Origin: Macrostomum lignano
Taxonomy: Eukaryota
DNA length: 64,000 nucleotides
Assembly: GCA_002269645.1 (NCBI GenBank)
Contig: NIVC01001804.1
Coordinates: 42,978 to 106,977, forward strand
Direction: 5' to 3'
Both the position numbers and the translations under genes were made by a program. Below are positions 19,259 to 52,749 of the stretch, in pieces. Each line of letters opens with the position of its first letter. Positions within the stretch are counted from its first letter, which is position 1. The notes beneath the pieces were generated by a model. That model had not been told where the DNA came from. It saw only the letters and a program-made list of their open reading frames with translations, and did no database searches.

Positions 19259-19839
19259 TCTTTACGTTTGGTAGCAAATACTCGTTACATGCAGCTCGTG
19301 TTTCGTTTAAATGTACTCATATATACGATGTGAGCAGTCCTGCTCATCGGCTCACTTTTCCCTGTAATTTTTGTCTCCGTCTCTCGTATGCATCTCAGGC
19401 GTACTGTAGCTATTGCCAACTGCTCATCAAGGAGTGACCAAGCAGAAAGCAATCTAATTTTGTCTGGATGAGCAGTATTTCAGTGGCGACAGAACTCAAA
19501 CAAAATACTGGTTTATTATTTAAAAGCTTTTGATTAACTACTTTAGTTTAGAAGAATTAGTCACAGGGTTATAAACTTTACACGGAAACGAAAAATATCA
19601 TAAAAATAAAATGAAACGATAATTGAGTACTTGAAGGTTAAGCAGATTGACTTGAGTAGACATCAGAGTCAAATAACCATTAGTCATATTCAGAAGGTAA
19701 CACGATCGGTGTTTGAACAGCAGAAAAGTGTCCACATTTATCAATCAAGCTGCCAATACGAGTATATCAAATATTCCATCATTAAAGACAGCTCCGTGAC
19801 ATCGCCGCTACCTGAAGAAACTCACAGCGGCTTCAAAGG

Positions 19840-22800: not shown

Positions 22801-25800
22801 GCTGACTGGGGCAACATTGAAGCTCTCCTCCGCCGGCAACGGCGTCTCCGGCGGCAGCCTCAGATTTTCTGGAAGCGGAGGGGGCGGCGCGTTGACAATG
22901 GCGGCGAAGAACTCGCGCAGCTCGTTCCTGCGCTCATCCGGAGTGTCGCCTGCCAGGTTGAGCGCAATGCGCCGCTTTCGCCCCGTCAGAGTGTTGATGG
23001 CGGACCAGGCCACGCGCCCTCTGGCATCGGGCCCTGCGGCAGAGACGGCTTGGATGGCGTCATCGACAGCGGACTGCTGCCGCTGCAGGTAGACAGCCGC
23101 CAGAGCCTCCTCCGCCTCGCGAGTTGGCCGCCCACTCAGACGAAGCCTCTCCAGATCTTCCCTCGCTTCGTCGATCGCGGGGTCGTCCTGCCAGACCGGC
23201 TGCCCGCGCTGGGCCGGTCGCATCAGCGGGACTGCTTGCTCCGCAGCGGCTCGAACTGCAGCGCTCACCTCCGCGTACTCGGCTCCTCCACGCTTGTCGC
23301 CCAGCGCAGTGACAAAGGCACCGGCAAAGCGACGTCGCGTCTCGGCGTCTCTGAGCGCGCGGTAGTAGCGCCGCGGTGGCCGCTTTGGCGGACGGTAGAG
23401 CGGGTCCCGAAGCCGAAGGTCGCAGATGAGCAGCCGATGGTCGGACCGCAGAGCCAGCGGCGTAACCCCCCGATAGCAGGCACCCCAGATAGCAAGCATC
23501 CACCTAATAGCAAGCACCCTAAGAAAGCAAGCACCCCCAGATAGCAAGCATCTCCAGATAGCAAGCACCCCAGATAGCAAGCACCCCCAGATAGCTAGAA
23601 CCCCCAAGACAGCAAGCATCCCCCCCCCCCAGATAGCAAGCACCCCCAGATAGCACGCATATCCAGATAGCAAGCACTCCAAGATAGCAGGCACCCCAGA
23701 TAGCAAGCATCCACCTAATAGCAAGCACCCTTAGATAGCAAGCACCCCCAGATAGCACGCATCTCCAGATAGCAAGCACTCCAAGATAGTAGGCACCCCA
23801 GATAGCAAGCATCCACCTAAAAGCAAGCACCCCCAGATAGCTAGAACCCCCAAGATAGCAAGCATCCCCCCCAGATAGCAAGCACCCCGAGATAGCAAGC
23901 ACCCCCAGATAGCAAGCATCCCCAGATAGCAAGCACCCCCAGATAGCAAGCATCCAATTGATAGCAATTATCTATCTTAAATAGCAAGCATCCACCAGAC
24001 AATAAGTATCTAGTGCAACAATTTCCTTAGCTTTATAGTGGCTCCTTTATGATTGGCATGACGCTTCTTTTTACGTTTGTAATTGTCTCCATTATGACAT
24101 GGTGGCTCTTTTATGTTTGACATGGTGGCTTTTTAATGTTTGACCTGGTGGCACTTTAATGTCTGCAATGATGGCTCTTTAATGTCTGACATGGAGTCAG
24201 TTATACGCTTGACATGGTGGCTCTTTAATGTTTGACGTGGTGGCTCTTTTATGTTCGACATGGTGGCTCTTTAATGTTCGACATGGTGGCTCTTTAATGT
24301 TCGACATGGTGGCTCTTTAATGTTCGACATGGTGGCTCTTTAATGTTCGACATGGTGGCTCTTTAATGTTCGACATGGTGGCTCTTTAATGTTTGACATG
24401 CTGGCTCTTTAATCTTTGACATGGTGGCTCTTTAATGTTAGACATGGAGTCACATATATGTTTGACATGGTGGCCTTTAATGTTTGAAATGGTGCCACTT
24501 TTGTTTGACATTGTGCTTCTTTTATGTTTAGCAATTTGTGTTTTTAAGGTTTTTGAATAAAAATATCTTTTTGCACTACTAAGATTCGAATTGAGGTCGC
24601 TGCATTAGCAGTCCAGTCTGTTCGCATCTAGGCTATCTCTTGTCGATTGGAGGACATGAATAGTGGCACTTATAATTCAATTCTTATAGCAAATCTGTTA
24701 GAGTAGAAAGCTATGACATAATCAATTAGTATCAGTCTCAATTTAAGTTAGCAATATGGTTACGCAATTTAAATCAAGTCGTGTGTTCATTTCTTTGGCA
24801 CTGTTTTCAACTTGCTGTGATGCAATCTTTATCAGAATTGAAATTCAGTCAGTCAGGTTTTTCTCTAGCATTCTTACAATGCATTTCAGGTCGAAAGAGC
24901 TGCTTGACATTTGCAGAAAATCATATTTTTCGAGTATTTAATCCCTTTAATATTGATCAATTTCTTAGCCAAGATGCATGCACCATCCCAGGAAAATTTT
25001 GATCGAATGGTGCAAGTTTGAAGAGAATCGGTTGAGCCATTCTCGAAAAAATCAATTACACGCACGCACAAATACAGCGCAAAATTAGTATATAGAAAAA
25101 AAGTTTCATGATAGATTTAGTAAACAGAAACTAGCAATCTAGTGCGGCCCGGGCGCCCAATAAGCAAGGAGCAAAAATAGTTCATGGAAAACAATAAATA
25201 AAGCACATTTTCTTAGGAACCAATTCCTTCTTCACTTTTAAAAATCACCTTATTTGTGTAAAATTGTCACGGACAAAGGTGTTTGCTATGAATCACTTTT
25301 TCTCTAAAATTAACAAACAGACAACAAAATATAGCTCCCTCTAAATAGAAAATATTCCCAAGACAGCAAGCATCCCCCAGACAGCAAGCATCACCCCAGA
25401 TAGCAAGCATCCCCCAGATAGCAAGCATTACCCCAGATAGCAAGCATCACCCCAGATAGCAAGCATCACCCCAGATGGCAAGCATCACCCCAGATAGCAA
25501 GCATCTGCAGACAGCAAGCATCCCCCAGATAGAAGCATCCATCCAGATCGCAAGCATCCTGCAGATAGCAAGCATCCCCCAGATAGAAGCATCCACCCAG
25601 ATAGCAAGCATTCTGCAGATAGCAAGCATCCCCCAGATATTGTTGAAGCATCCTGAAGATAGCAAGCACCCCCCCCCCAGATATTATAGAAGCATCCACC
25701 CAGATAGCAAGCATCCTGCAGATAGCAAGAATCCCTAAATAGCAAGCATCCCTGGATAAAAAGAATCCCATACATGTAGCCAGTGCCCCCTCTCCCAAAT

Positions 25801-28800
25801 AGCAAGTACCCCCCTCTAGAGCAAGCATCCTCCAGATAGCAAGCATTCACGAGACAGCAAGTAGCTAGTGCAAATGTTACCTCCGCTAATGCAATAATCG
25901 CTTTCTCAGGTTGTGCAACAATCCACGTCTCAGCGAGCGCAATAATCTCTTTTTTAGACAGCGCAATACTAGATCAATAGCCCTTTCTAATCTAGTGCAA
26001 AAATCTTTGGCTTATCAAGTGCAATATTCCTTGGTTTATCTGGTGCAATATTCCTTATTATCAAAGTGCAATAATCCTTGGTTTATCAAGTGCAGTAATC
26101 CTTGGCTTATCAAGTGCAATAATCCTTGGTTTATCAAGTGCAATAATCCTTTGTTTATCAAGTGCAATAATCCTTGGTTTATCAAGTGCAATAATCCTTG
26201 GTTTATCAAGCGCAGTAATCCTTGGTTTATCAAGTGCAATAATCCTTGGTTTATGAAGTGCAATAATCCTTGGTTTAGCAAGCGCCATAATCCTGGTCTT
26301 TTTAGTTAGTCGTGTAAAAAATGTTTTCAATAAAAAATTATGCTACTTTTTTAATACACTCCTAAGATTCGAACCCAGGTCGCTGCATTAGCACGTGTTC
26401 ACGTGTAGGCTAGCTCTCATTGGAATTTATAGATGAATTTGTAGCACTTATAATTCAACACTCACACCAAGTCAATTGAGTAAAAGTCACACGAAGCAGT
26501 TATGACATAATCTATTTCTTAGGCAAGTCAGTACCAGTCTCTATTAAAGTTAGCAATATGGTTACGCAATAAAAATGAAGTCTTGTGCTATGCTTCCACA
26601 CTGCGTTTTCAATACTGTGACGCAATTCAGTTCAGTTTCAAAATTCAGCCAGTACAAAGACGATAAATAAAAAGCCTATTGTGATGATGCAATCCATTTC
26701 AGAATCAGAATTTAACCAGTCAGTTTTTTCTCTAGCATTCTTACAATGCATTTCAAGTCGAAAGAGCTGCTTGACCTTTGCAAGAAAGCATGTTTTTCGA
26801 ATATTTAATCCCTTTAGCATCAAGCAATTTCTTAGCCACGATGCATGTACCGTCACGGAAAAATTTCTGATTGAACAGTGCATGTTCGAAGAAAATCGGT
26901 TGAGCCGTTTTTTTAAAGTCGATCACACACACACACACACATATACATATACTGACAGACCATTTTTAGTATATGGACTAGCAATCTTCGCCCCCCGATG
27001 GGGGACATCTGGATAGAATCCTTGTTCTTTACAAATAACAAATAGACAGCGAAATAAAGCCTTCATAAAAAACAACCTCTAAAAAGTGACATTCTCAACT
27101 GACATTCCCTCTAAAAACAAAACATCCCAATACAGCAAGCATCCTCAGACAGCATTCAAGTATCGATCCCCAAATAGCGAAATCCTCCAGACTGCAAGCA
27201 AGCATCTCCCAGATAGCAAGCATCCCCCCGATAGCAAGCAACCCCAGATAGCAAGCATCCCCCAGATAGCAAGCATCCCCCATATCCCAGATAGTAAGCA
27301 TCCCCCAGACTGCAAGCAACCCCTGATAGCAAGAATCCCCCAGATAGCAAGCATCCCCCAGATAGCAAGCATCCCCCAGATAGCAAGCATCCCCCATATC
27401 CCAGATAGTAAGCATCCCCCAGACTGCAAGCAACCCCTGATAGCAAGAATCCCCCAGATAGCAAGCATCCTCCAGACCGCAAGCAACCCCAGATAGCAAG
27501 CATTAACCTGGATACAAAGAGACCTTATAGATATCTAGCAACCCCCTCTTAGATAGCAAGTACCCTCCACCCCCCAAGAGCAAGCATCCCCCAGACCGCA
27601 AGCAACCCCAGATAGCAAGCATTAACCTGGATACAAAGAGACCTTATAGATATCTAGCAACCTCCTCTTAGATAGCAAGTACCCTCCACCCCCCAAGAGC
27701 AAGCATCTTCCAATAGCAAGTTACCCCAGTAGCAAGCATCCTTCCGATAGCAAGCATCCCCCCGATAGCAAGCAACCCCAGATAGCAAGCATCCCCCAGA
27801 TAGCAAGCATCCCCCATATCCCAGATAGTAAGCATCCCCCAGACTGCAAGCAACCCCTGATAGCAAGAATCCCCCAGATAGCAAGCATCCCCCAGATAGC
27901 AAGCATCCCCCAGATAGCAAGCATCCCCCATATCCCAGATAGTAAGCATCCCCCAGACTGCAAGCAACCCCTGATAGCAAGAATCCCCCAGATAGCAAGC
28001 ATCCTCCAGACCGCAAGCAACCCCAGATAGCAAGCATTAACCTGGATACAAAGAGACCTTATAGATATCTAGCAACCCCCTCTTAGATAGCAAGTACCCT
28101 CCACCCCCCAAGAGCAAGCATCCCCCAGACCGCAAGCAACCCCAGATAGCAAGCATTAACCTGGATACAAAGAGACCTTATAGATATCTAGCAACCTCCT
28201 CTTAGATAGCAAGTACCCTCCACCCCCCAAGAGCAAGCATCTTCCAATAGCAAGTTACCCCAGTAGCAAGCATCCTTCCGATAGCAAGCATCCCCTTGAT
28301 AGCAAATATCCATCCTTAAATAGCAAGCATCCACCAGAGAAAGTAGCTAGTGCAACAATTTCCTTAGCTTTATAGTGGCTCCATTTTGTTTGGCATGACA
28401 CTTCTTTTATGTTTGAAACGGTGTCTCTTTTATGTTTAAAAAGGTGGCTCTTTAATGTTGACATAGTGGCTCTTCTATGATTACCATGGCGGCCCTTTTA
28501 CGTTTGAAATGTTGTCTCTGTTATGTTTGACATGGTGGCTCTTCTATGTTTGACATGGTGTCTCTTCTTTGTTTGACATGGTGGCTCTTTTATGTTTGAC
28601 ATGCAGTCACATATATGTTTGACATGATGGCGCTTTAATGTTTGACATGGAGTCACGTATATGTTTGACAATGTGGCTCTTTAATGTTTTACATGGTGGC
28701 TCTTTTATGATCGACATGGTGGCTCTTTTATGTTCGACATGGTGGCTCTTTATTGTTTGACATGGTTGCTCTTTAATGTTCGACATGGTGGCTCTTTATT

Positions 28801-31800
28801 GATTGACATAAAGTCACATATATGTTTTACATGGTGCTTCTTTTATGTTTTGCATGGTGGCTCTTTTATGTTTGACATGGTGGGTCTTTTATGTTTGACA
28901 TGGTGGCTCTATAATGTTAGACATGGTGGTCCTTTTATGCTTGACATGGTGGCTCTTTAATATTTGACATGGTGGCTCTTTTATGTTTGACATGATGGCT
29001 CTTTAATGTTCGACATGGTGGATCTATAATGTTAGACATGGTGGCTTTTTAATGTTCGACATGGTGCCTCTTTAATGTTCGACATTGTGGCTTTTTAATG
29101 TTTGACATTGTGGCTCTTTAATGTTTGACATGGTGGCTCTTTTATGTTCGACATGGTGGCTCTTTACTGTTTGACATGGTCATGGAGTCACAAATATGTT
29201 TGACATGGTGGCTCTTTTATGTTTGACATGATGGCTCTTTAATGTTTGACATGGTGGCTCTTTTATGTTCTTCATGGTGGCTCTTTTATGTTTGACATGG
29301 AGTCACGAATAAACTTGACATGGTGACTCGTTAATGTTAGACATGGTGGCTCTTTAATGTTTGACCTGGTGGCAGCTTAACGTAATGATGGCTCTTTAAT
29401 GTTTGACATGGTGGCTCTTTAATATTTGACATGGTGGCCCTTTAATGTTCGACATGGTGGCTCTTTAATGTTAGACATGGTCGCTCTTTAATTTTTGACA
29501 TGGTGGCTCTTTAATGTTCGACATAGTGGTCCTTTTATGCTTGACATGGTGGCTCTTTAATATTTGACATGGTGGCTCTTTTATGTTTGACATGATGGCT
29601 CTTTAATGTTCTACATGGTGGCTCTTTAATGTTTGGCATGATGGCTTTTTGATGTTTGACATGGAGTCACGAATATACTTGACATGGTGACTCAATAATG
29701 TTAGACATGGTGGCTCTTTAATGTTAGACATGGTCGCTCTTTAATTTTTGACATGGTGGCTCTTTAATGTTCGACATAGTGGTCCTTTTATGCTTGACAT
29801 GGTGGCTCTTTAATATTTGACATGGTGGCTCTTTAATGTTAGACATGGTGGTTCTTTAATGTTCGACATGGTGGCTCTTTAATGTTTGACATTGTGGCTC
29901 TTTAATGTTCGACATGGTGGCTCTTTAATGTTCGACCTGGTGGCTCTTTAATGTTCGACATGGTGGCTCTTTACTGTTTGACATGGTGGCTCTTTAATTT
30001 TTGACATGGTGGCTCTTTAATGTTCGACATGGTGCCTCTTTAATGTTTGACATGGTGGTCGTTTTATGTTTGACATGGTGGCTCTTTTATGCTTGACATG
30101 ATGGCTCTTTAATGTTTGACATGAAGTCACATATAAGTTGGACATGGTGGCTCTTTAATGTTTCACATTGTTGTTTTTTGTGTTTAGCATTTAGTGTTTT
30201 TAAGGTTTTTTAATAAAAAAATCTTTTTGCATTACTAAGATTCGAACCCAGGCTGCTATATTAGCAGTCCAGTCTGTTCGCATCGAGGCTATCTCTTTTC
30301 AATTGGAGAACGTGATTTGTGGCCCTTATAATTCAATACTTACAGCAAGTTGGTTAGAGTAAAAAGTTATGACATAATCAATTTCTCAGTCAGCCTACTG
30401 TCAGTCTCAATTTAAGTTAGCAATATGGTTACGCAATTTCAATCAAGTCTTGTGCGCATTTCTTCGGCACTGTTTTCAACTTGTTGTGATGTAATTTTTA
30501 TCACAATCGGAATTCAGCCAGTCAGTGTTTTTTCTTGCATTCTTCCAATGCATTTCAAGTCGAAAATTTTGCTTGAAGTTTGCAAAAAAGCATGTTTTTC
30601 GAATATTTAATCCCTTTAATATTGAGCAATTTCTTAGCCAAGATGCATGTACCGTCCCAGGAAAATTTCTGATCGAATGGTGCAAGTTTGAAGAAAATCG
30701 GTTGAGCCAATTTTTCTGAAATCTATCGCATACCTACCTACCTACCCACATACAGACAACTCATTTTTAGTATATAAGACTAGCAATCTTTGCCCCCCGA
30801 TGGGGGACATCTGGATAGAATCCTTGTTCTTTACAAATAACAAATAGACAGTGAAATAAAGCCTTCATAAAAACAACAGACATTCCCTCTTAAAAACAAA
30901 ACATCCCAAGACAGCAAGCATCCCCAGACAGCAGCATTCAAGCATCGATCCCCAAATAGCAAGCATCCCCCAGATAGCAAGCATCCCCCCGATAGCAAGC
31001 AACCCCAGATAGCAAGCATCCCAGATAGCAAGCATTCCCCCAGACCCCAGATAGTAAGCATCCCCCAGATAGCAAGCACCCCCAGATAGCAAGCAACCCC
31101 AGATAGCAAGCATCCCAGATAGCAAGCATTCCCCCAGACCCCAGATAGTAAGCATCCCCCAGATAGCAAGCATCCCGCAGATAGCAAGCATCCCCCAGAT
31201 AGCAAGCATCCCCCAGATCGCAAGCATCCCCCAGATCGCAAGCATCCCCCAGATAGCAAGCATCCCCCAGATAGCAAGCATTCCGCTAGACCCCAGCTAG
31301 TAAGCATCCCCCAGATAGCAAGCATTCCCCCAGACCCCAGATAGTAAGCATCCCCCAGATAACAAGCATCCCGCAGATAGCAAGCATCCCCCAGACAGCA
31401 AGCATCCCCCAGACAGTAAGCATCCCCCAGATAGCAAGCATCCCGCAGATAGCAAGCATCCCCCAGATAGCAAGCATCCCCCAGATCGCAAGCATCCCCC
31501 AGATCGCAAGCATCCCCCAGATAGCAAGCATCCCCCAGATAGCAAGCATTCCGCTAGACCCCAGCTAGTAAGCATCCCCCAGATAGCAAGCATCCCGCAG
31601 ATAGCAAGCATCCCCCAGATAGCAAGCATCCCCCAGATCGCAAGTATCCCAGAGACAGCAAGCAACCCCTGATAGAAAGCATAACCTGGATACAAAGAGA
31701 CATTATAGATATCTAGCAAACCCCTCTCAGATAGCAAGTACTCCCCACCCCCAAGAGCAAGCATCCCCCTGATAGCAAGTATCCATCCTTAAATAGCAAG

Positions 31801-34800
31801 CATCCACCAGGGAACAAGTAGCTAGTGCAACAATTTACTTAGCTTTATAATGGTTCTATTTTGTTTGGCATGACAATTCTTTTATGTTTGAAATGGTGTC
31901 TCTTTTTGTTTAAAAAGGTGGCTCTTTAATGTTTGACATGGTAGCTCTTTTGTGTTTGACATGGTAGCTCTTTAATGTTTGACATAGTTGGCTCTTTTAT
32001 GTTCGACATGGTGGCTCTTCTATGTTTGACAAGGCGGCCCTTTTTCATTTGAATTGGTGTCTTTTATATGTCTGCCATGGTGGCTCTTTTATGTTTGACA
32101 TGGAGTTACTTATATGTTTGACATAATGCCTCTTTTATGTTTGACACGAGGGCTCTTTTATGTTTGACATGATACCTCTTTTATGTCTGACATGGGGTAG
32201 CTCTTTTATGTTCGACGTGGTAGCTCTTTAATGTCTGACATGGTGGCTCTCTTATGTTTCGCAAGGTGGGTCTTTTATGTTTAACATGGTGGCTCTTCCA
32301 TGTTTGACATGGTGGCTCTTTAATGTATGGCATGATAGCTTTTTAATGTTTGACATGGTGGCTCTCTTATGTTTGACATGAAGTAACGTATATGTTTGAC
32401 ATGGTGGCTTTTTAATGTTTTACATGGTGTCTCTTTAATGTTTGACATGGTGGTTCTTTAATGTTTGACATGAAGTAACGTATATGTTTGACATGGTGGC
32501 TCTTTTATGTTTGACATGGTGGCTCTTTAATGTTTGACATGGTGACTCTTTAATATTTGACATGGTGGCTCTATAATGTTTGACATGGTGGCTCTTTAAT
32601 GTTCGACAGGGTGGCTCTATAATGTTTGATATGATGGCTCTTTAATGTTCGACATGGTGGCTCTTTAATGTTTGACATGATGGCTCTTTAATGTTTGACA
32701 TGAAGTCACAAATATGTTGGACATGGTGGCTCTTTAATGTTTGACATGGTGGCTCTTTAATGTTCGACATGGTGGCTCTTTAATGTTTGACATGGTGGCT
32801 CTTTAATGTTTGACATGGTGGCTCTTTAATGTTTGACATGATTGCTCTTTAATGTTCGACATGGTGGCGCTTTTATGTTTGACATGATGGCTCTTTAATG
32901 TTTGACATGAAGTCACATATATGTTGGACATGGTGGCTCTTTAATGTTTGACATTGTGCTTTTTTTGTGTTTAGCATTTTGTGTTTTTAAGGTTTTTGAA
33001 TAAAAAAAATCTTTTTGCACTACTAAGATTCGAACCCAGGTCGCTGCATTAGCAGTCCAGTCTTTTCGCATCTATGCTATCTCTTTTCAATTGGAGATCA
33101 TGAATTGTGGCCCTTATAATTAAATTCTTATTGCAAATCGGTTAGAGTTAAAAGTTATGACATAATCAATTTCCCAGTCAGCCATTATCAGTGTCAATTT
33201 AAGTTAGCAATATGGTTACGCAATTTAAATCAAGTCGTGTGTTCATTTCTTTGGCACTGTTTTCAACTTGCTGTGATGCAATCTTTATCAGAATTGAAAT
33301 TCAGTCAGTCAGGTTTTTCTCTAGCATTCTTACAATGCATTTCAGGTCGAAAGAGCTGCTTGACCTTTGCAAAAAAGCATGTTTTTCGAATATTTAATCC
33401 CTTTAACATTGATCAATTTCTTAGCCAAGATGCAAGCACCATCCCAGGAAAATTTCTGATCGAATGGTGCAAGTTTGAAGAAAATCGGTTGAGCCATTTT
33501 TTCTGAAATCTATCGCATACCTACCTACTTACCTACCCACAGACAACTCATTTTTACACATTTTTAGTATATAGGACTAGCCATTTAGCCCCCTCCGGGT
33601 GGCTTCTTAGCAATTTAGCGCTTGTCTACTATAAGCAAATTTGCACAGTTGCTGAGCAAATGCCACTTATGTCCAAGCAGTTCTACAGTAGCAAATCTCT
33701 AAGTAGTTTTACACCAATTTTACTGAGACTAAAAAAGCTCTAAAAAAGTTACATTTCTCAATGTTTGCAACTTTGAAACTTCAATTCATTTATAGCTTTT
33801 TTTAGCATAATTCGTTATTTTATTTCATGAGTTAGTCTTGTTATTAATAGCATTATTGATTGATTGAATTTAGCTATATAGCAATATTATTGAATTTTGC
33901 AATAATTGAGCGAAAAAACTGACACGAGGACTACCATCAGATTTGCTCTACTCTCCCCAGTTTAGCATCACTCCCCCTGATTAGCAGCATTCCTCACCAG
34001 ATTAGCCCTACTCCGTCAGATTAGCACCACTCTCCCAGATTAGCACTTCGAAAAGATTAGCCCTACTCCCCCCTAATTAGTATTACTCCTCTCCAGATTA
34101 GCAATTCTCCTCTCGAGATTAGCACTATTCCTCCCAGATTAAGACTACTCCTCCAGATAAGCAATACTCTTCTGATATTAGCCCCATGCCCCCCACCAAT
34201 TAGCACTGCGCCCAGATAAACACTCTGCCGAGATTAACACTCTGCCCAGATTAGCACTACTTCCACAGATTAGCACCACTCCCCAAAAATTTGCACAACT
34301 TCCCAAAAATTAGCACCGTTTTATACAAAATTAGCACCGCTCCCCAGATTAGCACCGCTCCTCAGATTAGCATCACTGAGCCCCCAGACTTCCCCCCTGA
34401 TTAGCACCACTACCCCTATATTAGCACTCCGCCCAGATTAGCAACACTTTGCCAAGATTAGCACTACTCCTCCATTTTTGCACCACTCACTACCCCTAAA
34501 TTAGTAATGCTCTCTGCAAATTAGCACATAGTCACAGTAGATTGGCAATGCTCTAGAAGATTAATGCAGTCCCAGAATAATATCATTAAATGAAAATTTC
34601 TAAATTTCTAAATTACAGCTTCAGCTTTTCAGCCTCAATGCAGACTCCAATTGCCGACCAGCTGCTTTGCCTCTACTACAGCTATTTTCGAAGAGAAGCC
34701 TATACTGTTCCCTTCAGAATTCTCATTCATCCCCAGCATTCTGCAGTTCTTCTCTCGGCTGGCTCCTCAGTCTCAGCGAACTTGCAATGATCCTTTCAAC

Positions 34801-37222
34801 AATTAAAATTTTTTCAGCATTTAGTACGACTCACTAATCAATATTCGATACATATCGGCAGAATTTTGCAGAACTCTGGATTTAGCAATGCCTTCAGCAG
34901 TTTAGCAGCATTGTCTGTAGTTTAGCAAGTTCATGCTTTAAATGGAGCTAGGCAACACCCATTGATGAGACCAGCAAAACTTGAAGCAGTTTTACAAATC
35001 AAATTTGCTTAGTAGCTTGTGCCGATTAGCAAAAATAATTAATTGCTACTTAATAAAAAATGCTTCAATCGCTAATAGATGTAATCGAAAGATGTTCCAA
35101 TTAGTCGATACAAAAGTTACAAATAAAAATTAATTAATTAAAATTTAATTGTTTGCAGCGAGGTTGTCTCGAACCTGGGACCTTACGCCTAGCCTAAACC
35201 TAGTGCCTACAGTGCGGCTACTCCGCCTATTGATGGAAAGGCGAGAAAATCAGCCATATAAGCTTCGGCACTGCAATCAAATACATAGCAGTGATAGGCT
35301 GCTCAGTGCGCAGGCAGAGCCAATGCACAGTTGAGTGAAATCTATAAATAGCAATTGTCTATGCAGTCCGTCAGTCAGCCAGGGTCAGAATGTACACACG
35401 CAGCCAGAATGTACACATGCTGCACTGAGCATTTTTCTCTCCCTTGCACACTGCAGCCAGTATTGAAACTTACACAGTGGAGAGAGAAAATTTATGGCGC
35501 AATGTCAATTGGAGTTTCAATTCAAGTTAAATAGAGTTTTCCTATCAGTTGGCACTGGCGCAATCATTAAAATTGGCTGTGAAGTTTTTTCACTGCGCGC
35601 AGGCTGATACAATTTGCATTAAAAAAGCCTATTTAAAACAGTTTTTCAAATCCAATTAGCATCCCTTTAGCATTAAAGCAGATATAAGAAATTTTAACTG
35701 TCTTTTTTTCCAGACAATTTTAAATCTTTTGGCGAAAACGCGATCAAAATTAATCAAGAATTGCACTCTCTAGAGCGTTACAGACAGACAAACAGACAAA
35801 CAGAAAACAGACAAACAGACAAACAGACAAACAGACAAACAGACAAACAGACAAACAGACAAACAGACAAACAGACAAACAGACAAACAGACAAACAGAC
35901 AAACAGACAAACAGACAAACAGACAAACAGAAAACAGACAAACAGACAAACAGATCTTAGCGATTTAGTATAGGTGGAATGGATGGATGGATGGAGGATG
36001 GATGGATTTCTAATTATCTGAGCTGCTCGCAGATGGAGTTTCTAAGAAAATCAGAAAAAATCAGCATTGGCGAGAGCGCATCCGATTTCTCACACGCAGC
36101 TCATTTTCCATTTTTGCAGCATGATTTTCCTTCCACCTCACAATGTCTATCAAGGCACTCACGCACAGCCTCCCAGTTCTCCATCTGCAGCTCAACCCAC
36201 ACACTCTCACTGCACACCGAGGCCCTACAGCTTCCATTCTCGACTGAGATCAACCGGCACCCCATTGGCTAAGAGGCAGCCAGCCAATCACAGCTCTCGC
36301 CCATCAAGCAGTCAGTCAGAGACAAGCTCAGCTGACTGGCTCTGATTGGCTGGCCTGAGACTGCAGCACTGGCCACCGCAGCAGAATGCTGCAAAACTTG
36401 ATGGACACAGCAGCGAACTGCTCACTTACCGCTCGATGTAGCTGGCCAGCTCTGAGTGGCCGCTGAGCCTCGCCAGGTCCAACGCCGTCCGACCCTCGCG
36501 ATCCTGCAGTCCGAGCAGCCGCGACCTCTTCGAGTTTCCGTGATTCAAGCATTCATTGAATTTAAACTGCCTAAGCAGGTGCAGCAGGTGCTTGGCGCAT
36601 TTCCAGCGTCCAGTCCGCGCCGCCTCCATCAGCGGAGTGGCGCCGTTGTCGTTCCGCAGCCACTTCGCATCGAAAGACAGCAGCGTCAGCAGACGCAGGT
36701 GGTCCTGCCGGGCTGCTAGGTGCGCAGCCGTGTCGCCGTTCGCGTCAGCCGCCTTGGGGTTCGCGGCCAGCTTAAATAAGTACAAGATGCACTTTTCAGT
36801 GTGCACGGGAGTCTCAGGAGCGTCGGCCACCAGCATGAGGACGGTCCGACGATCTGCATCAGCGCTGGTGACCAGCTGGCGCGTTGCCAGCCGCCGCACC
36901 TGTCCGAAGTCACCTCGGATGACGTCGTGGGCGAGAGTATGGAGATCGGCTGGTGAGTCTCCGACGCTTGCCCGGTTGCTGGGGTCCGGCTGAGTGAGTT
37001 CCTGCAACTGCAATTAAGCACTAAAGCTGCACATTGAAACATGTGAGTGAGAACCAAAGATATTTTTCAAATGGATTGCTTTAACTCACAAAAAAATAAT
37101 ATTTCAAACAAAAGAATGCTACAAAACTTACATTCTTACAAAGAATCACCCTATGTACAATATAAGGTAAAACTTACCTTGTAATCAGAATAGTATATCA
37201 CCTTAGAGGCCGCACTGCCCAT
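19840..37222 (-). CDS. P2: ankyrin-only paralog of the ANK-caspase (399 aa) with an N-terminal MGSAASK exon and a stop in exon 5
   Basis: Exons: 37222-37178 (45 nt), 37007-36430 (578), 20968-20914 (55), 20840-20347 (494), 19867-19840 (28, ending in TAG). Total 1200 nt = 400 codons. The phases match, and remnants of the paralogous intron 2 survive at 25097-25130 and about 35995-36420. Confidence 0.68.
19882..20190 (+). repeat. 34-bp minisatellite in P2 intron 4, about 9 units
   Basis: AAACTCAGAGTGTGGATTTCAAATTGCAGAGTRT units starting at 19891, 19925 and so on. Confidence 0.92.
20347..20840 (-). CDS. P2 exon 4: ANK-A domain
   Basis: EEADRKELQRL...DSCLHWAGFGGNSAAASALLAAGASANARN...LAELLRG; donor GG|GTGAGT. 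Confidence 0.85.
21056..25096 (-). mobile_element. Non-autonomous Helitron unit H1 (interrupted by an RTE)
   Basis: Minus-strand 3' end GCCCCCCATCGGGGGGC-GAAGATTT-CTAG|T at 21056; 5' end TCTATATACTAA at 25096. Contains internal 18-bp and 23-bp satellites. Confidence 0.7.
21257..23465 (-). mobile_element. 5'-truncated RTE-clade non-LTR retrotransposon with an intact RT frame
   Basis: The ORF from about 23460 to 21304 has the end of the endonuclease (SDH), EQNGFR, DFRKAFDS, GVLQGDTLAPFLF and YADD. It has a 3' stem-loop (ACGCTGC...GCAGCGT), a (TTG)n tail, and a 10-bp TSD CCCCCCGATA at 21247-21256 and 23466-23475. Confidence 0.9.
23466..31810 (+). repeat. 18-bp GATAGCAAGCATCCCCCA satellite arrays (about 23466-24010, 25360-25860, 27120-28340, 30900-31810)
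   Basis: Direct tandem units, one array per Helitron unit. They are the source of the GMLAIW/GGCLLS pseudo-ORFs. Confidence 0.92.
24090..32960 (+). repeat. 23-bp GACATGGTGGCTCTTTAATGTTT satellite arrays (about 24090-24530, 28420-30170, 31910-32960); 24-bp variant at 26010-26300
   Basis: Direct tandem units without spacers, each following an 18-bp array inside a Helitron unit. Confidence 0.92.
25131..35974 (-). mobile_element. Head-to-tail array of four non-autonomous Helitron units (25131-26977, 26978-30779, 30780-33576, 33577 to about 35974)
   Basis: Three minus-strand junctions read hairpin...CTAG|TC(C/T)..ATACTAAAAATG with no intervening bases. The last unit is divergent: a different satellite at about 33940-34520 and a CAGACAAA microsatellite head. 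Confidence 0.68.
36430..37007 (-). CDS. P2 exon 2 (ANK-B), copy 1
   Basis: 578 nt; acceptor AATTGCAG|TTG; donor CG|GTAAGT. Confidence 0.85.
37178..37222 (-). CDS. P2 exon 1, copy 1: MGSAASKVIYYSDYK
   Basis: AAAAATG GGC AGT GCG GCC TCT AAG...TAC AAG|GTAAGT. 45 nt, phase 0, in frame with exon 2. Confidence 0.7.
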
Positions 37223-39222
37223 TTTTAAAGACTCGAGCAGTTAATCAACTGGAAAATCAAAATGCATGAGCAGCTGCGTCAACTCAAACTCAACAGATTA
37301 TATAGCGGCCTCAGAAGACATTGTCAGAGAGATGCACTGCCTGCGCCTCATTGGCTGAATGCAAACCCAGTGTCTCTGTTTCTGATTCTCTGCCGTACAG
37401 AATGCATACTACTCACGGCAGTAGAAGTTAGATTGTAGATATTATTTTCACTTTCGCATAATACTTTTTTCTGAATTTCTCTGTTGTAATACATGGCATA
37501 CAATGATAAAACAACAACAACAAAATACGTGCTCCGCGTCACAGTGCGCGCCTCAAAGGTAGGTCTCGAATGAACGCCCCGCCGCCGACCGAATCTGGGG
37601 CGCCGGCGTCAGCCAGCAGGCAGTCGACGAATCGCCGAGTGCGGGCTTGCCCCCCCCCCCCACCGGTAGGGTGCCTGCAGCGTCAATAGCAGCACCTCCT
37701 GCATCGGTTGTGGGAAGTACGTTCGGCTCTGATGATGTGGAATGCAAGCTGGAGTCGCCGACGGCGCAACAGGTCGCTTGGACGAACCAGGCCGTCATGG
37801 TGATAGAAAGCTGCGTTGGTCACTCGCTCGTTGCCGATCCTGAAGGCAGCGCTTAGCAGGTCAGCGTGCGCCGCGTCAACTTGTTGCTTGAGCAACTCCA
37901 TCAGCGTCCAGGTCTCGGCGTTGTACAACAGGACGGTCTCGATCACCGCCTGGAAAAACGCCAGGCGGTTTGCAGCGAGGTTGTCTCGAACCTGGGACCT
38001 TACGCCTAGCCTAAACCTAGTGCCTACAGTGCGGCTACTCCGCCTATTGATGGAAAGGCGAGAAAATCAGCCATAAACCTTCGGCACTGCAGTCAAATAC
38101 ATAGCAGTGATGGGCTGCTCAGTGCGCAGGCAGAGCCAATGCACAGTTGAGTGAAATCTATAAATAGCAATTGTCTATGCAGTCCGCCAGTCAGCCAGGG
38201 TCAGAATGTACACACGCAGCCAGAATGTACACATGCTGCACTGAGCATTTTTCTCTCCCTTGCACACTGCAGCCAGTATTGAAACTTACACAGTGGAGAG
38301 AGAAAATTTATGGCGCAATGTCAATTGGAGTTTCAATTCAAGTTAAATAGAGTTTTCCTATCAGTTGGCACTGGCGCAATCATTAAAATTGGCTGTGAAG
38401 TTTTTTCACTGCGCGCAGGCTGATACAATTTGCATTAAAAAAGCCTATTTAAAACAGTTTTTCAAATCCAATTAGCATCCCTTTAGCATTAAAGCAGATA
38501 TAAGAAATTTTAACTGTCTTTTTTTCCAGACAATTTTAAATCTTTTGGCGAAAACGCGATCAAAATTGGTCAAGAATTGCACTCTCTAAAGCGTTACAGA
38601 CAGACAAACAGACAAACAGACAAACAGACAAACAGACAAACAGACAAACAGACAAACAGACAAACAGACAAACAGACAAACAGACAAACAGACAAACAGA
38701 CAAACAGACAAACAGACAAACAGAAAACAGACAAACAGACAAACAGATCTTAGCGATTTAGTATAGGTGGAATGGATGGATGGATGGAGGATGGATGGAT
38801 TTCTAATTATCTGAGCTGCTCGCAGATGGAGTTTCTAAGAAAATCAGAAAAAATCAGCATTGGCGAGAGCGCATCCGATTTCTCACACGCAGCTCATTTT
38901 CCATTTTTGCAGCATGATTTTCCTTCCACCTCACAATGTCTATCAAGGCACTCACGCACAGCCTCCCAGTTCTCCATCTGCAGCTCAACCCACACACTCT
39001 CACTGCACACCGAGGCCCTACAGCTTCCATTCTCGACTGAGATCAACCGGCACCCCATTGGCTAAGAGGCAGCCAGCCAATCACAGCTCTCGCCCATCAA
39101 GCAGTCAGTCAGAGACAAGCTCAGCTGACTGGCTCTGATTGGCTGGCCTGAGACTGCAGCACTGGCCACCGCAGCAGAATGCTGCAAAACTTGATGGACA
39201 CAGCAGCGAACTGCTCACTTAC

Positions 39223-40015
39223 CGCTCGATGTAGCTGGCCAGCTCTGAGTGGCCGCTGAGCCTCGCCAGGTCCAACGCCGTCCGACCCTCGCGATCCTGC
39301 AGTCCGAGCAGCCGCGACCTCTTCGAGTTTCCGTGATTCAAGCATTCATTGAATTTAAACTGCCTAAGCAGGTGCAGCAGGTGCTTGGCGCATTTCCAGC
39401 GTCCAGTCCGCGCCGCCTCCATCAGCGGAGTGGCGCCGTTGTCGTTCCGCAGCCACTTCGCATCGAAAGACAGCAGCGTCAGCAGACGCAGGTGGTCCTG
39501 CCGGGCTGCTAGGTGCGCAGCCGTGTCGCCGTTCGCGTCAGCCGCCTTGGGGTTCGCGGCCAGCTTAAATAAGTACAAGATGCACTTTTCAGTGTGCACG
39601 GGAGTCTCAGGAGCGTCGGCCACCAGCATGAGGACGGTCCGACGATCTGCATCAGCGCTGGTGACCAGCTGGCGCGTTGCCAGCCGCCGCACCTGTCCGA
39701 AGTCACCTCGGATGACGTCGTGGGCGAGAGTATGGAGATCGGCTGGTGAGTCTCCGACGCTTGCCCGGTTGCTGGGGTCCGGCTGAGTGAGTTCCTGCAA
39801 CTGCAATTAAGCACTAAAGCTGCACATTGAAACATGTGAGTGAGAACCAAAGATATTTTTCAAATGGATTGCTTTAACTCACAAAAAAATAATATTTCAA
39901 ACAAAAGAATGCTACAAAACTTACATTCTTACAAAGAATCACCCTATGTACAATATAAGGTAAAACTTACCTTGTAATCAGAATAGTATATCACCTTAGA
40001 GGCCGCACTGCCCAT
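39223..40015 (-). CDS. P2 exon 1 (40015-39971) and exon 2 (39800-39223), copy 2
   Basis: Same exon sequences and splice sites as copy 1. Confidence 0.7.
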
Positions 40016-42014
40016 TTTTAAAGACTCGAGCAGTTAATCAACTGGAAAATCAAAATGCATGAGCAGCTGCGTCAACTCAAACTCAACAGATTATATAGCG
40101 GCCTCAGAAGACATTGTCAGAGAGATGCACTGCCTGCGCCTCATTGGCTGAATGCAAACCCAGTGTCTCTGTTTCTGATTCTCTGCCGTACAGAATGCAT
40201 ACTACTCACGGCAGTAGAAGTTAGATTGTAGATATTATTTTCACTTTCGCATAATACTTTTTTCTGAATTTCTCTGTTGTAATACATGGCATACAATGAT
40301 AAAACAACAACAACAAAATACGTGCTCCGCGTCACAGTGCGCGCCTCAAAGGTAGGTCTCGAATGAACGCCCCGCCGCCGACCGAATCTGGGGCGCCGGC
40401 GTCAGCCAGCAGGCAGTCGACGAATCGCCGAGTGCGGGCTTGCCCCCCCCCCCACCGGTAGGGTGCCTGCAGCGTCAATAGCAGCACCTCCTGCATCGGT
40501 TGTGGGAAGTACGTTCGGCTCTGATGATGTGGAATGCAAGCTGGAGTCGCCGACGGCGCAACAGGTCGCTTGGACGAACCAGGCCGTCATGGTGATAGAA
40601 AGCTGCGTTGGTCACTCGCTCGTTGCCGATCCTGAAGGCAGCGCTTAGCAGGTCAGCGTGCGCCGCGTCAACTTGTTGCTTGAGCAACTCCATCAGCGTC
40701 CAGGTCTCGGCGTTGTACAACAGGACGGTCTCGATCACCGCCTGGAAAAACGCCAGGCGGTTTGCAGCGAGGTTGTCTCGAACCTGGGACCTTACGCCTA
40801 GCCTAAACCTAGTGCCTACAGTGCGGCTACTCCGCCTATTGATGGAAAGGCGAGAAAATCAGCCATAAACCTTCGGCACTGCAGTCAAATACATAGCAGT
40901 GATGGGCTGCTCAGTGCGCAGGCAGAGCCAATGCACAGTTGAGTGAAATCTATAAATAGCAATTGTCTATGCAGTCCGCCAGTCAGCCAGGGTCAGAATG
41001 TACACACGCAGCCAGAATGTACACATGCTGCACTGAGCATTTTTCTCTCCCTTGCACACTGCAGCCAGTATTGAAACTTACACAGTGGAGAGAGAAAATT
41101 TATGGCGCAATGTCAATTGGAGTTTCAATTCAAGTTAAATAGAGTTTTCCTATCAGTTGGCACTGGCGCAATCATTAAAATTGGCTGTGAAGTTTTTTCA
41201 CTGCGCGCAGGCTGATACAATTTGCATTAAAAAAGCCTATTTAAAACAGTTTTTCAAATCCAATTAGCATCCCTTTAGCATTAAAGCAGATATAAGAAAT
41301 TTTAACTGTCTTTTTTTCCAGACAATTTTAAATCTTTTGGCGAAAACGCGATCAAAATTGGTCAAGAATTGCACTCTCTAAAGCGTTACAGACAGACAAA
41401 CAGACAAACAGACAAACAGACAAACAGACAAACAGACAAACAGACAAACAGACAAACAGACAAACAGACAAACAGACAAACAGACAAACAGACAAACAGA
41501 CAAACAGACAAACAGAAAACAGACAAACAGACAAACAGATCTTAGCGATTTAGTATAGGTGGAATGGATGGATGGATGGAGGATGGATGGATTTCTAATT
41601 ATCTGAGCTGCTCGCAGATGGAGTTTCTAAGAAAATCAGAAAAAATCAGCATTGGCGAGAGCGCATCCGATTTCTCACACGCAGCTCATTTTCCATTTTT
41701 GCAGCATGATTTTCCTTCCACCTCACAATGTCTATCAAGGCACTCACGCACAGCCTCCCAGTTCTCCATCTGCAGCTCAACCCACACACTCTCACTGCAC
41801 ACCGAGGCCCTACAGCTTCCATTCTCGACTGAGATCAACCGGCACCCCATTGGCTAAGAGGCAGCCAGCCAATCACAGCTCTCGCCCATCAAGCAGTCAG
41901 TCAGAGACAAGCTCAGCTGACTGGCTCTGATTGGCTGGCCTGAGACTGCAGCACTGGCCACCGCAGCAGAATGCTGCAAAACTTGATGGACACAGCAGCG
42001 AACTGCTCACTTAC

Positions 42015-42807
42015 CGCTCGATGTAGCTGGCCAGCTCTGAGTGGCCGCTGAGCCTCGCCAGGTCCAACGCCGTCCGACCCTCGCGATCCTGCAGTCCGAG
42101 CAGCCGCGACCTCTTCGAGTTTCCGTGATTCAAGCATTCATTGAATTTAAACTGCCTAAGCAGGTGCAGCAGGTGCTTGGCGCATTTCCAGCGTCCAGTC
42201 CGCGCCGCCTCCATCAGCGGAGTGGCGCCGTTGTCGTTCCGCAGCCACTTCGCATCGAAAGACAGCAGCGTCAGCAGACGCAGGTGGTCCTGCCGGGCTG
42301 CTAGGTGCGCAGCCGTGTCGCCGTTCGCGTCAGCCGCCTTGGGGTTCGCGGCCAGCTTAAATAAGTACAAGATGCACTTTTCAGTGTGCACGGGAGTCTC
42401 AGGAGCGTCGGCCACCAGCATGAGGACGGTCCGACGATCTGCATCAGCGCTGGTGACCAGCTGGCGCGTTGCCAGCCGCCGCACCTGTCCGAAGTCACCT
42501 CGGATGACGTCGTGGGCGAGAGTATGGAGATCGGCTGGTGAGTCTCCGACGCTTGCCCGGTTGCTGGGGTCCGGCTGAGTGAGTTCCTGCAACTGCAATT
42601 AAGCACTAAAGCTGCACATTGAAACATGTGAGTGAGAACCAAAGATATTTTTCAAATGGATTGCTTTAACTCACAAAAAAATAATATTTCAAACAAAAGA
42701 ATGCTACAAAACTTACATTCTTACAAAGAATCACCCTATGTACAATATAAGGTAAAACTTACCTTGTAATCAGAATAGTATATCACCTTAGAGGCCGCAC
42801 TGCCCAT
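42015..42807 (-). CDS. P2 exon 1 (42807-42763) and exon 2 (42592-42015), copy 3
   Basis: Same exon sequences and splice sites as copy 1. Confidence 0.7.
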
Positions 42808-43089
42808 TTTTAAAGACTCGAGCAGTTAATCAACTGGAAAATCAAAATGCATGAGCAGCTGCGTCAACTCAAACTCAACAGATTATATAGCGGCCTCAGA
42901 AGACATTGTCAGAGAGATGCACTGCCTGCGCCTCATTGGCTGAATGCAAACCCAGTGTCTCTGTTTCTGATTCTCTGCCGTACAGAATGCATACTACTCA
43001 CGGCAGTAGAAGTTAGATTGTAGATATTATTTTCACTTTCGCATAATACTTTTTTCTGAATTTCTCTGTTGTAATACATGGCATACAAT

Positions 43090-43850
43090 GATAAAACAAC
43101 AACAACAAAATACGTGCTCCGCGTCACAGTGCGCGCCTCAAAGGTAGGTCTCGAATGAACGCCCCGCCGCCGACCGAATCTGGGGCGCCGGCGTCAGCCA
43201 GCAGGCAGTCGACGAATCGCCGAGTGCGGGCTTGCCCCCCCCCCACCGGTAGGGTGCCTGCAGCGTCAATAGCAGCACCTCCTGCATCGGTTGTGGGAAG
43301 TACGTTCGGCTCTGATGATGTGGAATGCAAGCTGGAGTCGCCGACGGCGCAACAGGTCGCTTGGACGAACCAGGCCGTCATGGTGATAGAAAGCTGCGTT
43401 GGTCACTCGCTCGTTGCCGATCCTGAAGGCAGCGCTTAGCAGGTCAGCGTGCGCCGCGTCAACTTGTTGCTTGAGCAACTCCATCAGCGTCCAGGTCTCG
43501 GCGTTGTACAACAGGACGGTCTCGATCACCGCCTGGAAAAACGCCACCCTCTGGCGGTCAGGTAGGCCCTTGGATTGCAAGACTGCCCTCACAGAATAAA
43601 AGGCAGCCCATGACGTCAAGAACTAGACCGCCGAGGAAGTCGAACTGCTGACAACACGAAAGCTCCGTCGCCGGGCCATCTGCGCCTTGACTCATAAATG
43701 CAACCTCGATGTCGTCCGGCACGCAGGGCACAACGGTTTTCTGTGTATTGACCACCAGACCGACAGCTTGTACAGTTGTTTCTGGGCGCCCTCGACCGTT
43801 CAGGACAGCAGGACGAGATCGTCAGCGTAGCCAAGCACGCTGAGCCGCCT
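43090..43850 (-). mobile_element. Degenerate RTE 3' fragment (shorter copies at 37510-37967 and about 40305-40759)
   Basis: VIETVLLYNAETWTL...VDAAHADLL and SVLGYADDL-like sequence homologous to 21304-22100; (TTG)n tail; frameshifted. Confidence 0.85.
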
Positions 43851-51300: not shown

Positions 51301-52749
51301 GGCACCGCAGATGCCGCTCACCTGGGCTGTCAGGCCGGAGATATAGCCATTTTTTCCCACAACCAGCCGCATCTCCCTGCAACAGTAAAAAAGTGAGCGG
51401 CAAATTTGCAATTTTCCTAAATCTGACAACTGGCCGCCAAAATTAAAATTTATTATTTACCATAGAAGTTTTATGGTAAATTTTAGAAAATATAAACTGG
51501 CAATTAGGCGGTTAAGGCCCCTTCGGGGGACCTGTACCTCCTTGTATGCCCCAGAGTATTTGTGAGACATTTGTGAAAAAGCATCCCCCAGATGGCAAGT
51601 ATATCCCAAAAACAAGCACCCGGATCCCCGATATAAATGCAACATAGTTTTGAAGCTAAAAATGGAATAAAGAATTTAAATAAACTACATGTAGCTTCTG
51701 AGCTTTAAGTCTTGACATCTCAGCAATTCCCCATGAGCCTTGACATCTCAGCAATTCCATTATGAGCCTTGTCATCTCAGCAATTCCATTATGAGCCTTG
51801 ACATCTTTGCAATTGGCCTTGACATCTCATCAATTCCCCCCAAGGTTCGCTTTTAAATGTGTCACACAGACACTCACTCTTGGTATATATTGGATTCCTA
51901 ATTATCTAATTAGCTGCTCACAGATGGACTTTTCAAAAGAACTGCAGCAGCGAACTGCTCACTCACCGCTCGATGTAGCTGGCCAGCTCTGAGTGGCCGC
52001 TGAGCCTCGCCAGGTCCGACGCCGTCCGACCCTCGCGATTTTTCAGTCCGAGCAGCCGCGACCTCTTCGAGTTTCCGTGCTGTCTGCACTCATTGAACAT
52101 TGCCTGCCTGAGCAGGTGCAGCAGGTGCTTGGCGCATTTCCAGCTTCCAGTCCGCGCCGCCTCCATCAGCGGAGTGGCGCCGTTGTCGTTCCGCAGCCAC
52201 TTCGCATCGAACGACAGCAGCGTCAGCAGCCGCAGGTGGTCCCGCCGGGCTGCCAGGTGCGCAGCCGTGTCACCGTTCGCGTCAGCCGCCTTGGAGTTCG
52301 CGCCCAGCTTAAATAAGTACAAGATGCACTTTTCAGTGTGCACGGGAGTCTCAGGAGCGTCGGCCACCAGCATGAGGACGGTCCGACGAGCTGCATCAGC
52401 TCTGGTGACCAGCTGGCGCGTTGCCAGCCGCCGCACCTGTCCGAAGTCACCTCGGATGGCGTCGTGGGCGAGAGTCTGGAGATCGGCTGGTGAGTCTCCG
52501 ACGCTTTCCCGGTTGCTGGGGTCCGGCTGAGTGAGTTTCTGCAACTGCAATTGAGACACCTGGGAGTTACATCAAAGTACTGAAATTTTTTGAGTCAACT
52601 TGCACAAGCAACCGGAGTCGCCGACTGTAGATAATTACTACTACATGTATTCAGTTTCTGTCGCTTCAACTTACCGCAGAGTTAGGGAAGTCGGTAATTA
52701 TTTCTTCGTCTTCTGACGATGAATCAGAATCGTCTGAGGAGCTTGACAT
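47922..52749 (-). CDS. P3: ankyrin-ankyrin-caspase, 8 exons, 744 aa, catalytic His/Cys intact
   Basis: Exons: 52749-52675 (75 nt), 52544-51967 (578; alternative acceptor 52559), 51376-51322 (55), 51248-50764 (485), 49677-49636 (42), 49279-49220 (60), 49108-48622 (487), 48374-47922 (453). Total 2235 nt = 745 codons, all AG/GT with matching phases. Contains MAHG and QACRG. Confidence 0.82.
48622..49108 (-). CDS. P3 exon 7: caspase large subunit
   Basis: PQGYCLIINISRY, ERQGSVRDV, SFVCFMMAHG; donor CAG|GTAAGC. Confidence 0.9.
49314..49622 (+). repeat. (TG)nCTGTAGC minisatellite in P3 intron 5
   Basis: Same unit as 1293-1785 in a shorter array. Confidence 0.93.
50764..51248 (-). CDS. P3 exon 4: ANK-A domain
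   Basis: CSCLHHAARAGNSAAASALLAAGASANARN; donor GG|GTGAGT. Confidence 0.87.
51967..52544 (-). CDS. P3 exon 2: ANK-B domain
   Basis: 578 nt; DTAAHLAARRDH, GATPLMEAARTG; donor CG|GTGAGT. Confidence 0.87.

Follow-up and report, generated by a model that had tools for sequence, protein, structure and literature searches.

A candidate first exon with an N-myristoylation-type start in P2, an ankyrin-only gene of the flatworm Macrostomum lignano

We describe here the 5' end of P2, one of three related ankyrin-repeat genes carried by a 64,000-nt stretch of the Macrostomum lignano genome (GenBank assembly GCA_002269645.1, contig NIVC01001804.1, positions 42,978 to 106,977; this whole stretch is called the window, with coordinates counted from its first letter). 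In the paralogs P1 (1–7245) and P3 (47922–52857) a Peptidase_C14 domain follows two ankyrin exons, which we call ANK-B and ANK-A, and the M. lignano protein P0021 likewise combines Ank with PF00656. P2 is plausibly a young ankyrin-only member of this rapidly evolving Macrostomum gene family, with a 45-nt segment at 37222–37178 (minus strand) as its first coding exon, and the peptide encoded there is a predicted substrate of N-myristoyltransferase (NMT). We put the probability that this exon is used and its product lipidated at about 0.4, and stable membrane anchoring of P2 is speculation. At present the finding is a prediction from sequence, and it concerns a single gene copy that is lineage-specific and was rearranged recently.

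The first coding exon of P2

The candidate exon, ATGGGCAGTGCGGCCTCTAAGGTGATATACTATTCTGATTACAAG, encodes MGSAASKVIYYSDYK and carries every sequence hallmark of a genuine first coding exon. It opens with ATG GGC (37222–37217) in the context aaaaATGG. Since an in-frame TAA lies six codons upstream, this ATG is the sole start in its frame and no longer open reading frame (ORF) is possible. The splice donor at the other end, AAG/GTAAGT, agrees with the consensus at 9/9 positions (GTAAGT at 37177–37172). It is followed by an AT-rich intron 1 of 170 nt (37177–37008), which has a GC content of 0.29 compared with 0.44 in the exon; the first exons of P1 and P3 have 0.44–0.45 and intron 1 of P1 has 0.32. 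The intron ends in the acceptor ttaattgcag/TTGCAG, and the ANK-B exon begins at 37007 with TTGCAGGAACTC in phase 0. A preliminary description of this DNA had placed a 45-nt exon with a GTAAGT donor 170 nt upstream of ANK-B and in phase with it, and all of this is found on the minus strand as claimed. A second, weaker in-phase donor within the exon, TCTAAG/GTGATA at 37201, would leave MGSAASK alone.

Upstream of the exon there are promoter-like elements, CCAAT at 37354–37350 and TATATAA at 37304–37298 (minus strand), which may serve in P2 transcription; the latter sits 82 nt upstream of the ATG. A short upstream ORF of 9 codons, MHFDFPVD and stop (37241–37267, minus strand), shares the frame of the main ATG and ends 15 nt before it. 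To estimate how often such an exon would arise by chance, the 502 nt that separate the acceptor from the tail of an upstream LINE (long interspersed nuclear element) were shuffled 5000 times with dinucleotide composition preserved. An in-phase exon that starts with ATG, has no stop and ends at a 9/9 donor was present in 0.18% of the shuffled sequences, and one that also fits the myristoylation pattern described below in at most 0.02%.

The myristoylation signal

The N-terminus of P2, M1 G2 S3 A4 A5 S6 K7, satisfies all the NMT sequence rules: glycine directly after the initiator methionine, a residue at position 3 that is not charged, aromatic or proline, a small residue at position 6 (serine or threonine being best) and no proline at position 7, with a basic residue at position 7 or 8 as a favourable addition. 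The two strands of the window together contain 1031 ATGs with 14 open codons after them, and six of these fit the pattern MG{EDRKHPFYW}xx[STAGCN]{P}. Three of the six are copies of the P2 exon (see below), and the background rate is 3/1028 other open ATGs, or ~0.3%. The strict form of the pattern, with Ser/Thr at position 6 and Lys/Arg at position 7, is found among the 1031 in the three P2 copies only. The fit of Met-Gly-x-x-x-Ser-Lys to the NMT consensus, noted in the preliminary description, holds.

The signals of the Src-family SH4 region (MGSSKSK), G-alpha-i, ARF and calcineurin B have the same layout as P2, with Met1-Gly2, small uncharged residues at 3–5, Ser6 and Lys7. P2 also fits the PROSITE-type rule G-{EDRKHPFYW}-x(2)-[STAGCN]-{P}, with no Pro at position 7. 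However, unlike Src, P2 has no polybasic cluster, and unlike G-alpha and Lck it has no palmitoylable Cys. Residues 8–11 are hydrophobic, which differs from known NMT substrates, and both lipidation of P2 and use of this ATG are predictions.

Place of the exon in the family

Author-submitted M. lignano models (PAA83580.1 and PAA49408.1) and their loci, L004 (two genes) and L005, have 13-codon first coding exons, MAWRGKPPFPDEK, MAQRGKSPFPDER and MMEPWILPFPDEK. These end AAA/GTAAGT or AGA/GTAAGT in phase 0 and join, across an intron of 112–470 nt, to ..caattgcag/TTGCAG. The first coding exon of P3 (MSSSSDDSDSSSEDEEIITDFPNSA, 25 codons, 52675–52749, minus strand) is of a type that is joined to ANK-B in the M. 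lignano models P0021 and P0037, and is homologous to that of P1 (MSSSSSSSSLSTSSTSSESEKITMFSDRA, 29 codons, 7159–7245, minus strand). Both are Ser/acidic and begin as quoted previously, MSSSSSSSSLSTS... in P1 and MSSSSDDSDSSSEDEE... in P3. First-exon length thus varies from 13 codons (both genes of L004, and L005) through 15 (P2) and 25 to 29, and the acceptor and phase are common to all. Since the paralog models share a short phase-0 first exon and this acceptor, the P2 exon falls into the first-exon slot of the family and is, by its layout, the positional counterpart of a genuine family first exon.

The exon had been described as new and unrelated to those of P1 and P3. This stands for the promoter and the first ~7 residues, and probably fails for the exon as a whole: the last 5–8 residues (..VIYYSDYK) weakly resemble the family end ..[IL]x[FY][PS][DN]x[KA], with an empirical p of 0.003–0.011 in a post hoc test anchored at the donor. 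Some relationship of the P2 exon to the other first exons is therefore probable. The N-terminal halves of these exons differ in every subfamily, and P2 is the sole member seen to start with Met-Gly.

On the DNA level, the 5' module of P2 (37022–37509) has no significant similarity to P1, P3, L004 or L005, either in Smith-Waterman alignments against shuffles or with an nhmmer profile. The Smith-Waterman controls worked, with scores of 88 for P1 against P3 (shuffle maximum 31) and of 41 and 32 for L004 against P1 and P3 (shuffle maxima 28 and 29). The motifs TTCAGCCAAT and ATA[AT]AATCTG can be seen by eye at family-like positions in the module, at a similarity that does not reach significance, and no other copies of the module are found in five M. 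lignano-type loci. The last ~45 nt of intron 1 (to 37051) are homologous to intron 1 of the M. lignano paralogs, where they belong to a 54-nt repeat unit. In this unit, which is repeated in tandem upstream of the real acceptor, the final ~37 nt of intron 1 are joined to the first ~17 nt of ANK-B. Its copy number is between 1.3 and ~27 across the paralogs, with decoy acceptor sites in each copy (L001 5046–6560; L004 10090–10251 and 22830–23207; L005 10095–10151; window 37051–37008).

The P2 gene model

The complete model has five exons on the minus strand, which span 17 kb and add up to 1200 nt, with GT-AG at 4/4 introns and no internal stop. It encodes a 399-aa ankyrin-only protein ending in AELLRGYEDKKFFD and a stop codon. 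The first exon (37222–37178) is followed by ANK-B (37007–36430, 578 nt), which is entered in phase 0 and left in phase 2 and is 92–95% identical to ANK-B of P1 and P3. Intron 2 of the model built on copy 1 (20969–36429, 15.4 kb) contains 17/18-nt and 23-nt satellites and a sense-oriented LINE (RVT_1 ORF at 21304–23724); its retention would bring a stop directly after the ANK-B donor and a 208-aa product. Then come a mini-exon (20968–20914, 55 nt, encoding (R)EMRLVVGKNASLSGLTVQ), ANK-A (20840–20347, 494 nt) and a short terminal coding exon (19867–19840, (G)YEDKKFFD and the stop TAG at 19842–19840), with AATAAA after it at 19517–19512. That P2 lacks the protease, as proposed from the first reading of the sequence, is confirmed: the ORF ends at this TAG, a search for a caspase exon downstream of ANK-A, between 12 and 20.4 kb, found none, and Pfam detects ankyrin repeats only (Ank_2, Ank_4, Ank), while Peptidase_C14 (PF00656) is present in P1 and P3.

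Similarity among the three genes is mosaic. P2 ANK-B is closest to that of P3, part of P2 intron 2 (36290–36006) matches intron 2 of P1 at 89% identity, and the mini-exon and ANK-A match P3 at 86%. Synonymous divergence (dS) between paralogs is low in ANK-B (0.06–0.12; 36430–37007, 51967–52544 and 6410–6987) and 0.15–0.36 in ANK-A, and the 5' introns adjoining ANK-B are not alignable. This mosaic pattern suggests exon-scale gene conversion or recombination among P1, P2 and P3. Just past ANK-B, within ~100 nt of P2 intron 2 (36250–36350, minus strand, and in every repeat unit), there are three CCAAT/ATTGG boxes in a stretch conserved with the L001 paralog; the cluster could be an internal or antisense promoter.

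Tandem triplication of the 5' module

A unit of ~2.79 kb is present three times in tandem at 35151–43546 (minus strand). Each unit comprises a LINE 3' fragment, the promoter-like region, exon 1, intron 1, ANK-B and 1.28 kb of intron 2, and the copies, compared over 35830–37963, are identical save for the length of one G-run and the first 1–2 aligned bases of the unit. Identical copies of exon 1 lie at 39971–40015 and 42763–42807 (minus strand), with exact matches to the 51 nt of exon plus donor at 40015 and 42807, where 0 would be expected by chance. Presence of the exon in all three tandem copies, as first reported, is thus correct, but the copies give no independent support, as they come from a single recent and near-identical triplication; we rejected them as evidence of conservation for the same reason.

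The LINE 3' fragment (37510–37962, minus strand) consists of the end of a reverse-transcriptase ORF, a TGA and a (GTT)4 tail. An origin of the exon from this element was considered and rejected, as the LINE ends with TGA and (GTT)4 at ~37510, ~290 nt upstream of the ATG. Both the exon and the promoter-like region fall outside the fragment, and the full LINE at 21301 ends in the same way (TGA and a GTT tail). We also rejected the possibility that the module is a repeat from elsewhere in the window, where 37008–37535 matches its own three copies only.

Alternative explanations

Several observations weigh against an exon that is used and lipidated. A second membrane signal, either a Cys or a polybasic patch, was looked for in residues 1–30 of P2, GSAASKVIYYSDYKLQELTQPDPSNRASVG, and neither is there: K7, K15 and R26 are offset by D13, E18 and D22, for a net charge of ~0. 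Myristate alone gives weak, reversible membrane binding, and a second, polybasic or palmitoyl signal is normally needed. Calling P2 'membrane-anchored', as the preliminary description did, therefore goes beyond what myristate alone predicts for a protein with this N-terminus. At the acceptor, competing AG dinucleotides lie 20 and 14 nt before the productive one (37027 and 37021), and their use would lead to an immediate stop. The P2 N-terminus occurs in none of the 34 family proteins found. Among 5.8 billion cluster representatives there is none that has three 5-residue words in common with MGSAASKVIYYSDYK, and when 1.84 billion representatives were scanned with HMMER, matches were to the ANK-B part only and not to the N-terminus. 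The three exon copies are uninformative on selection because the triplication is recent and near-identical. Moreover, since ANK-B is 578 nt long, splicing from one ANK-B to the next shifts the frame, so that transcripts from either of the upstream copies would have to skip ~20 kb in order not to be aberrant. The case is weakened also by intron 2, with its 15.4 kb of satellites and a sense LINE compared with a species mean of 1.1–1.4 kb (PMC5730564). Finally, it is weakened by the apparently near-neutral evolution of the ankyrin exons in all three paralogs: the ratio of non-synonymous to synonymous rates (dN/dS) is 0.68–0.84 for ANK-B among P1, P2 and P3 and, for ANK-A, 1.12 (P2-P3), 0.71 (P2-P1) and 0.61 (P3-P1), and the changes specific to P2 are 3 synonymous and 14 non-synonymous.

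The alternative that fares best, though in our opinion still unlikely, is that P2 is a partial duplicate which is decaying or not expressed. Its exon signals would then be remnants inherited from the first exon of the family, Met-Gly with Ser6 and Lys7 would be a neutral accident at a hypervariable N-terminus, and myristoylated protein would not be made in any meaningful amount. The substitution pattern just described, the triplicated 5' module with its frame-incompatible ANK-B and the loaded intron 2 all agree with this, as do the divergence of the N-terminal halves between subfamilies, the failure to find the peptide in the protein databases searched, and other M. lignano copies that are visibly broken or truncated by repeats (L001, L003). 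In one of these loci (L003, NIVC01000028) there are two identical partial ANK-B exons, containing the second half only (5548–5881 and 9860–10193), each directly after a long 4-nt microsatellite, a further case of a family member truncated and duplicated through repeats. Decay is, however, difficult to square with five open exons and canonical splice sites over 17 kb, with the stop and poly(A) signal at the end and with a donor of perfect consensus. The high dN/dS is found also in P1 and P3, both of which have kept the caspase, and may reflect diversifying selection on ankyrin surfaces. As the same pattern is seen in these two genes, dN/dS cannot separate decay from diversifying selection, and being near 1 in all three paralogs it was discarded as an uninformative test of gene versus pseudogene. 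The missing peptide is likewise weak evidence on expression, since near-identical copies of the window's genes are absent from the databases: an exact look-up of its gene models returned nothing on record.

It is also possible, but improbable, that P2 is expressed with a different 5' end, either from another start or acceptor or by trans-splicing of a spliced leader to the ANK-B acceptor. In M. lignano 30–39% of genes are trans-spliced with a 35-nt leader, CGGTCTCTTACTGCGAAGACTCAATTTATTGCATG, that has ATG at its end, and [T/C]TNCAG is preferred as trans-acceptor (PMC8629364; PMC5730564). The P2 acceptor TTGCAG/TTGCAG/ fits this motif twice and is in phase 0, so a protein begun at the leader AUG would read M-LQELTQPDP... 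and lack MGSAASK. Several M. lignano protein models do start exactly at LQEL with no first exon, although these could equally be alignments that miss a first exon of 39–45 nt. An upstream cis donor turns an acceptor from trans- to cis-splicing, provided that transcription starts upstream of it (PMC8629364). Since there is a perfect 9/9 cis donor 170 nt upstream of the P2 acceptor, and since the author-submitted paralog models use a cis first exon at the same acceptor, trans-splicing is probably the less likely route for P2. A spliced-leader RNA gene was not found in the window. The 'WVPQLQLQ' starts of older UniRef models were considered as evidence for an upstream acceptor and set aside, because their extra 20 nt do not keep the frame of phase-0 first exons; these look like partial models.

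Alternatively, the exon may be used while Gly2 gives no functional anchor, being N-acetylated, left free (as a glycine N-degron) or bearing a myristate with a structural or protein-binding role, so that P2 stays cytosolic. This we also consider to have little chance of being right. The lack of Cys and of net charge in residues 1–30 speaks for it, as does the usual need for a second signal, and the hydrophobic VIYY at residues 8–11 occupies a place where NMT substrates usually have a hydrophilic linker. On the other side, positions 2–7 are near ideal for NMT (small residues at 3–5, Ser6, Lys7), and many singly myristoylated proteins do show regulated membrane association. Capture of the exon from another annotated gene has no support among the 5.8 billion and 1.84 billion representatives searched.

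The wider family and surrounding repeats

All strong protein matches are M. lignano ankyrin-repeat proteins (85–91% identity, E-values of 1e-110), and the ANK-B and ANK-A exons of P2 are 80–91% identical to members of the Macrostomum ankyrin-prodomain family. P3 has its counterpart, first exon included, in the M. lignano CASPASE_P20 protein A0A1I8J1V4 (UniRef; P0021). The model of this protein joins ANK-B straight to the YDGKIYF exon (in P3, 51966 to 49736), skipping the mini-exon and ANK-A; as the skipped 55 + 494 = 549 nt are in frame, this would be an ankyrin-shortened caspase isoform. Longer members within the 90% clusters show this ankyrin front end with a C-terminal protein kinase behind it (PAA49408.1) or with nothing. 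The arrangement of ANK-B, mini-exon and ANK-A with a kinase, a caspase or nothing behind it is seen in L005 (10001–14039), L004 (22739–25672) and the proteins P0041 (PAA49408.1) and P0043. The family thus appears to behave as a modular ankyrin prodomain with a swappable effector. Protease-less, ankyrin-only relatives are common in it, and P2 is not unusual in this respect.

Between P2 and P1 lies a separate gene, a 683-aa ORF at 13003–15054 (minus strand) made of ~17 near-identical 99-nt (33-aa) ankyrin repeats with 89% matches, with no exact match on record. Immediately past the terminal exon of P2, a ~1.8-kb segment that includes a 32-nt tandem array occurs twice, the two copies being 99.8% identical (15597–17385 and 17479–19268; region 15490–19268). 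Most of P2 intron 2 is made up of the LINE at 21043–24000, which has an 806-aa RVT_1 ORF and a (GTT)6 tail and is inserted in the 17/18-nt satellite CCCCAGATAGCAAGCATC, and of this satellite interleaved with the 23-nt satellite TCTTTAATGTTTGACATGGTGGC (23465–33000). Towards the end of the window there are long 22-nt and 23-nt satellites with 91–94% matches (55843–56904, 57379–59048 and 61946–63350) and plus-strand ORFs after them; one of these ORFs contains a Cys/His-rich stretch, CYRCNCEHRGEECPH, resembling the zinc knuckle of a retroelement gag.

Discussion

If the 45-nt exon is used, P2 exon 1 would be spliced to ANK-B, the mini-exon, ANK-A and the short terminal exon, giving the 399-aa ankyrin-only protein. 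Met1 would be removed by methionine aminopeptidase and NMT would then add myristate co-translationally to Gly2 of GSAASK. As P2 has no polybasic stretch and no nearby Cys, the lipid would be expected to give weak, reversible binding to membranes or partners and no fixed anchor. A parallel is the membrane form of NADH-cytochrome b5 reductase, where a short 5' exon alone likewise decides on Met-Gly and lipidation. There, however, the difference is between isoforms of one gene, while in P2 it lies between paralogs and is predicted from the sequence.

What such a protein would do is a matter of analogy. That P2 recruits or sequesters P3, as proposed in the preliminary description, or acts as a decoy on the neighbouring ankyrin-caspases is conjecture. 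The human CARD-only proteins COP/CARD16, INCA/CARD17 and ICEBERG/CARD18, found beside CASP1, are prodomain-only decoys that arose by partial tandem duplication. Like them, P2 consists of the prodomain only, came from local duplication and sits in the same orientation next to full-length caspase paralogs; unlike them, its prodomain is made of ankyrin repeats and it carries a lipidation-type N-terminus. The likeness seen is one of architecture. The fuller scenario is a long shot: turnover of the hypervariable, short first exon would have given the protease-less paralog a lipid anchor, the 5' module would then have tripled, and the resulting membrane ankyrin decoy would titrate or relocate its caspase or kinase neighbours. 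If true, this would make P2 an analogue of the CARD-only proteins that is built on ankyrin repeats and carries a lipid.

A 2024 survey found ankyrin caspases to be unique to parasitic platyhelminths save for one annelid case (PMC11463336). A free-living flatworm that has ankyrin-caspases, and that carries the same front end on kinases or on nothing, may be of more interest to specialists than the exon itself. M. lignano also has transgenesis. If the exon is indeed used, seven N-terminal residues would suffice to make a soluble ankyrin module lipid-modifiable, and P2 would be a simple example of how paralogs gain different subcellular addresses in a fast-expanding flatworm family of cell-death and signalling proteins.

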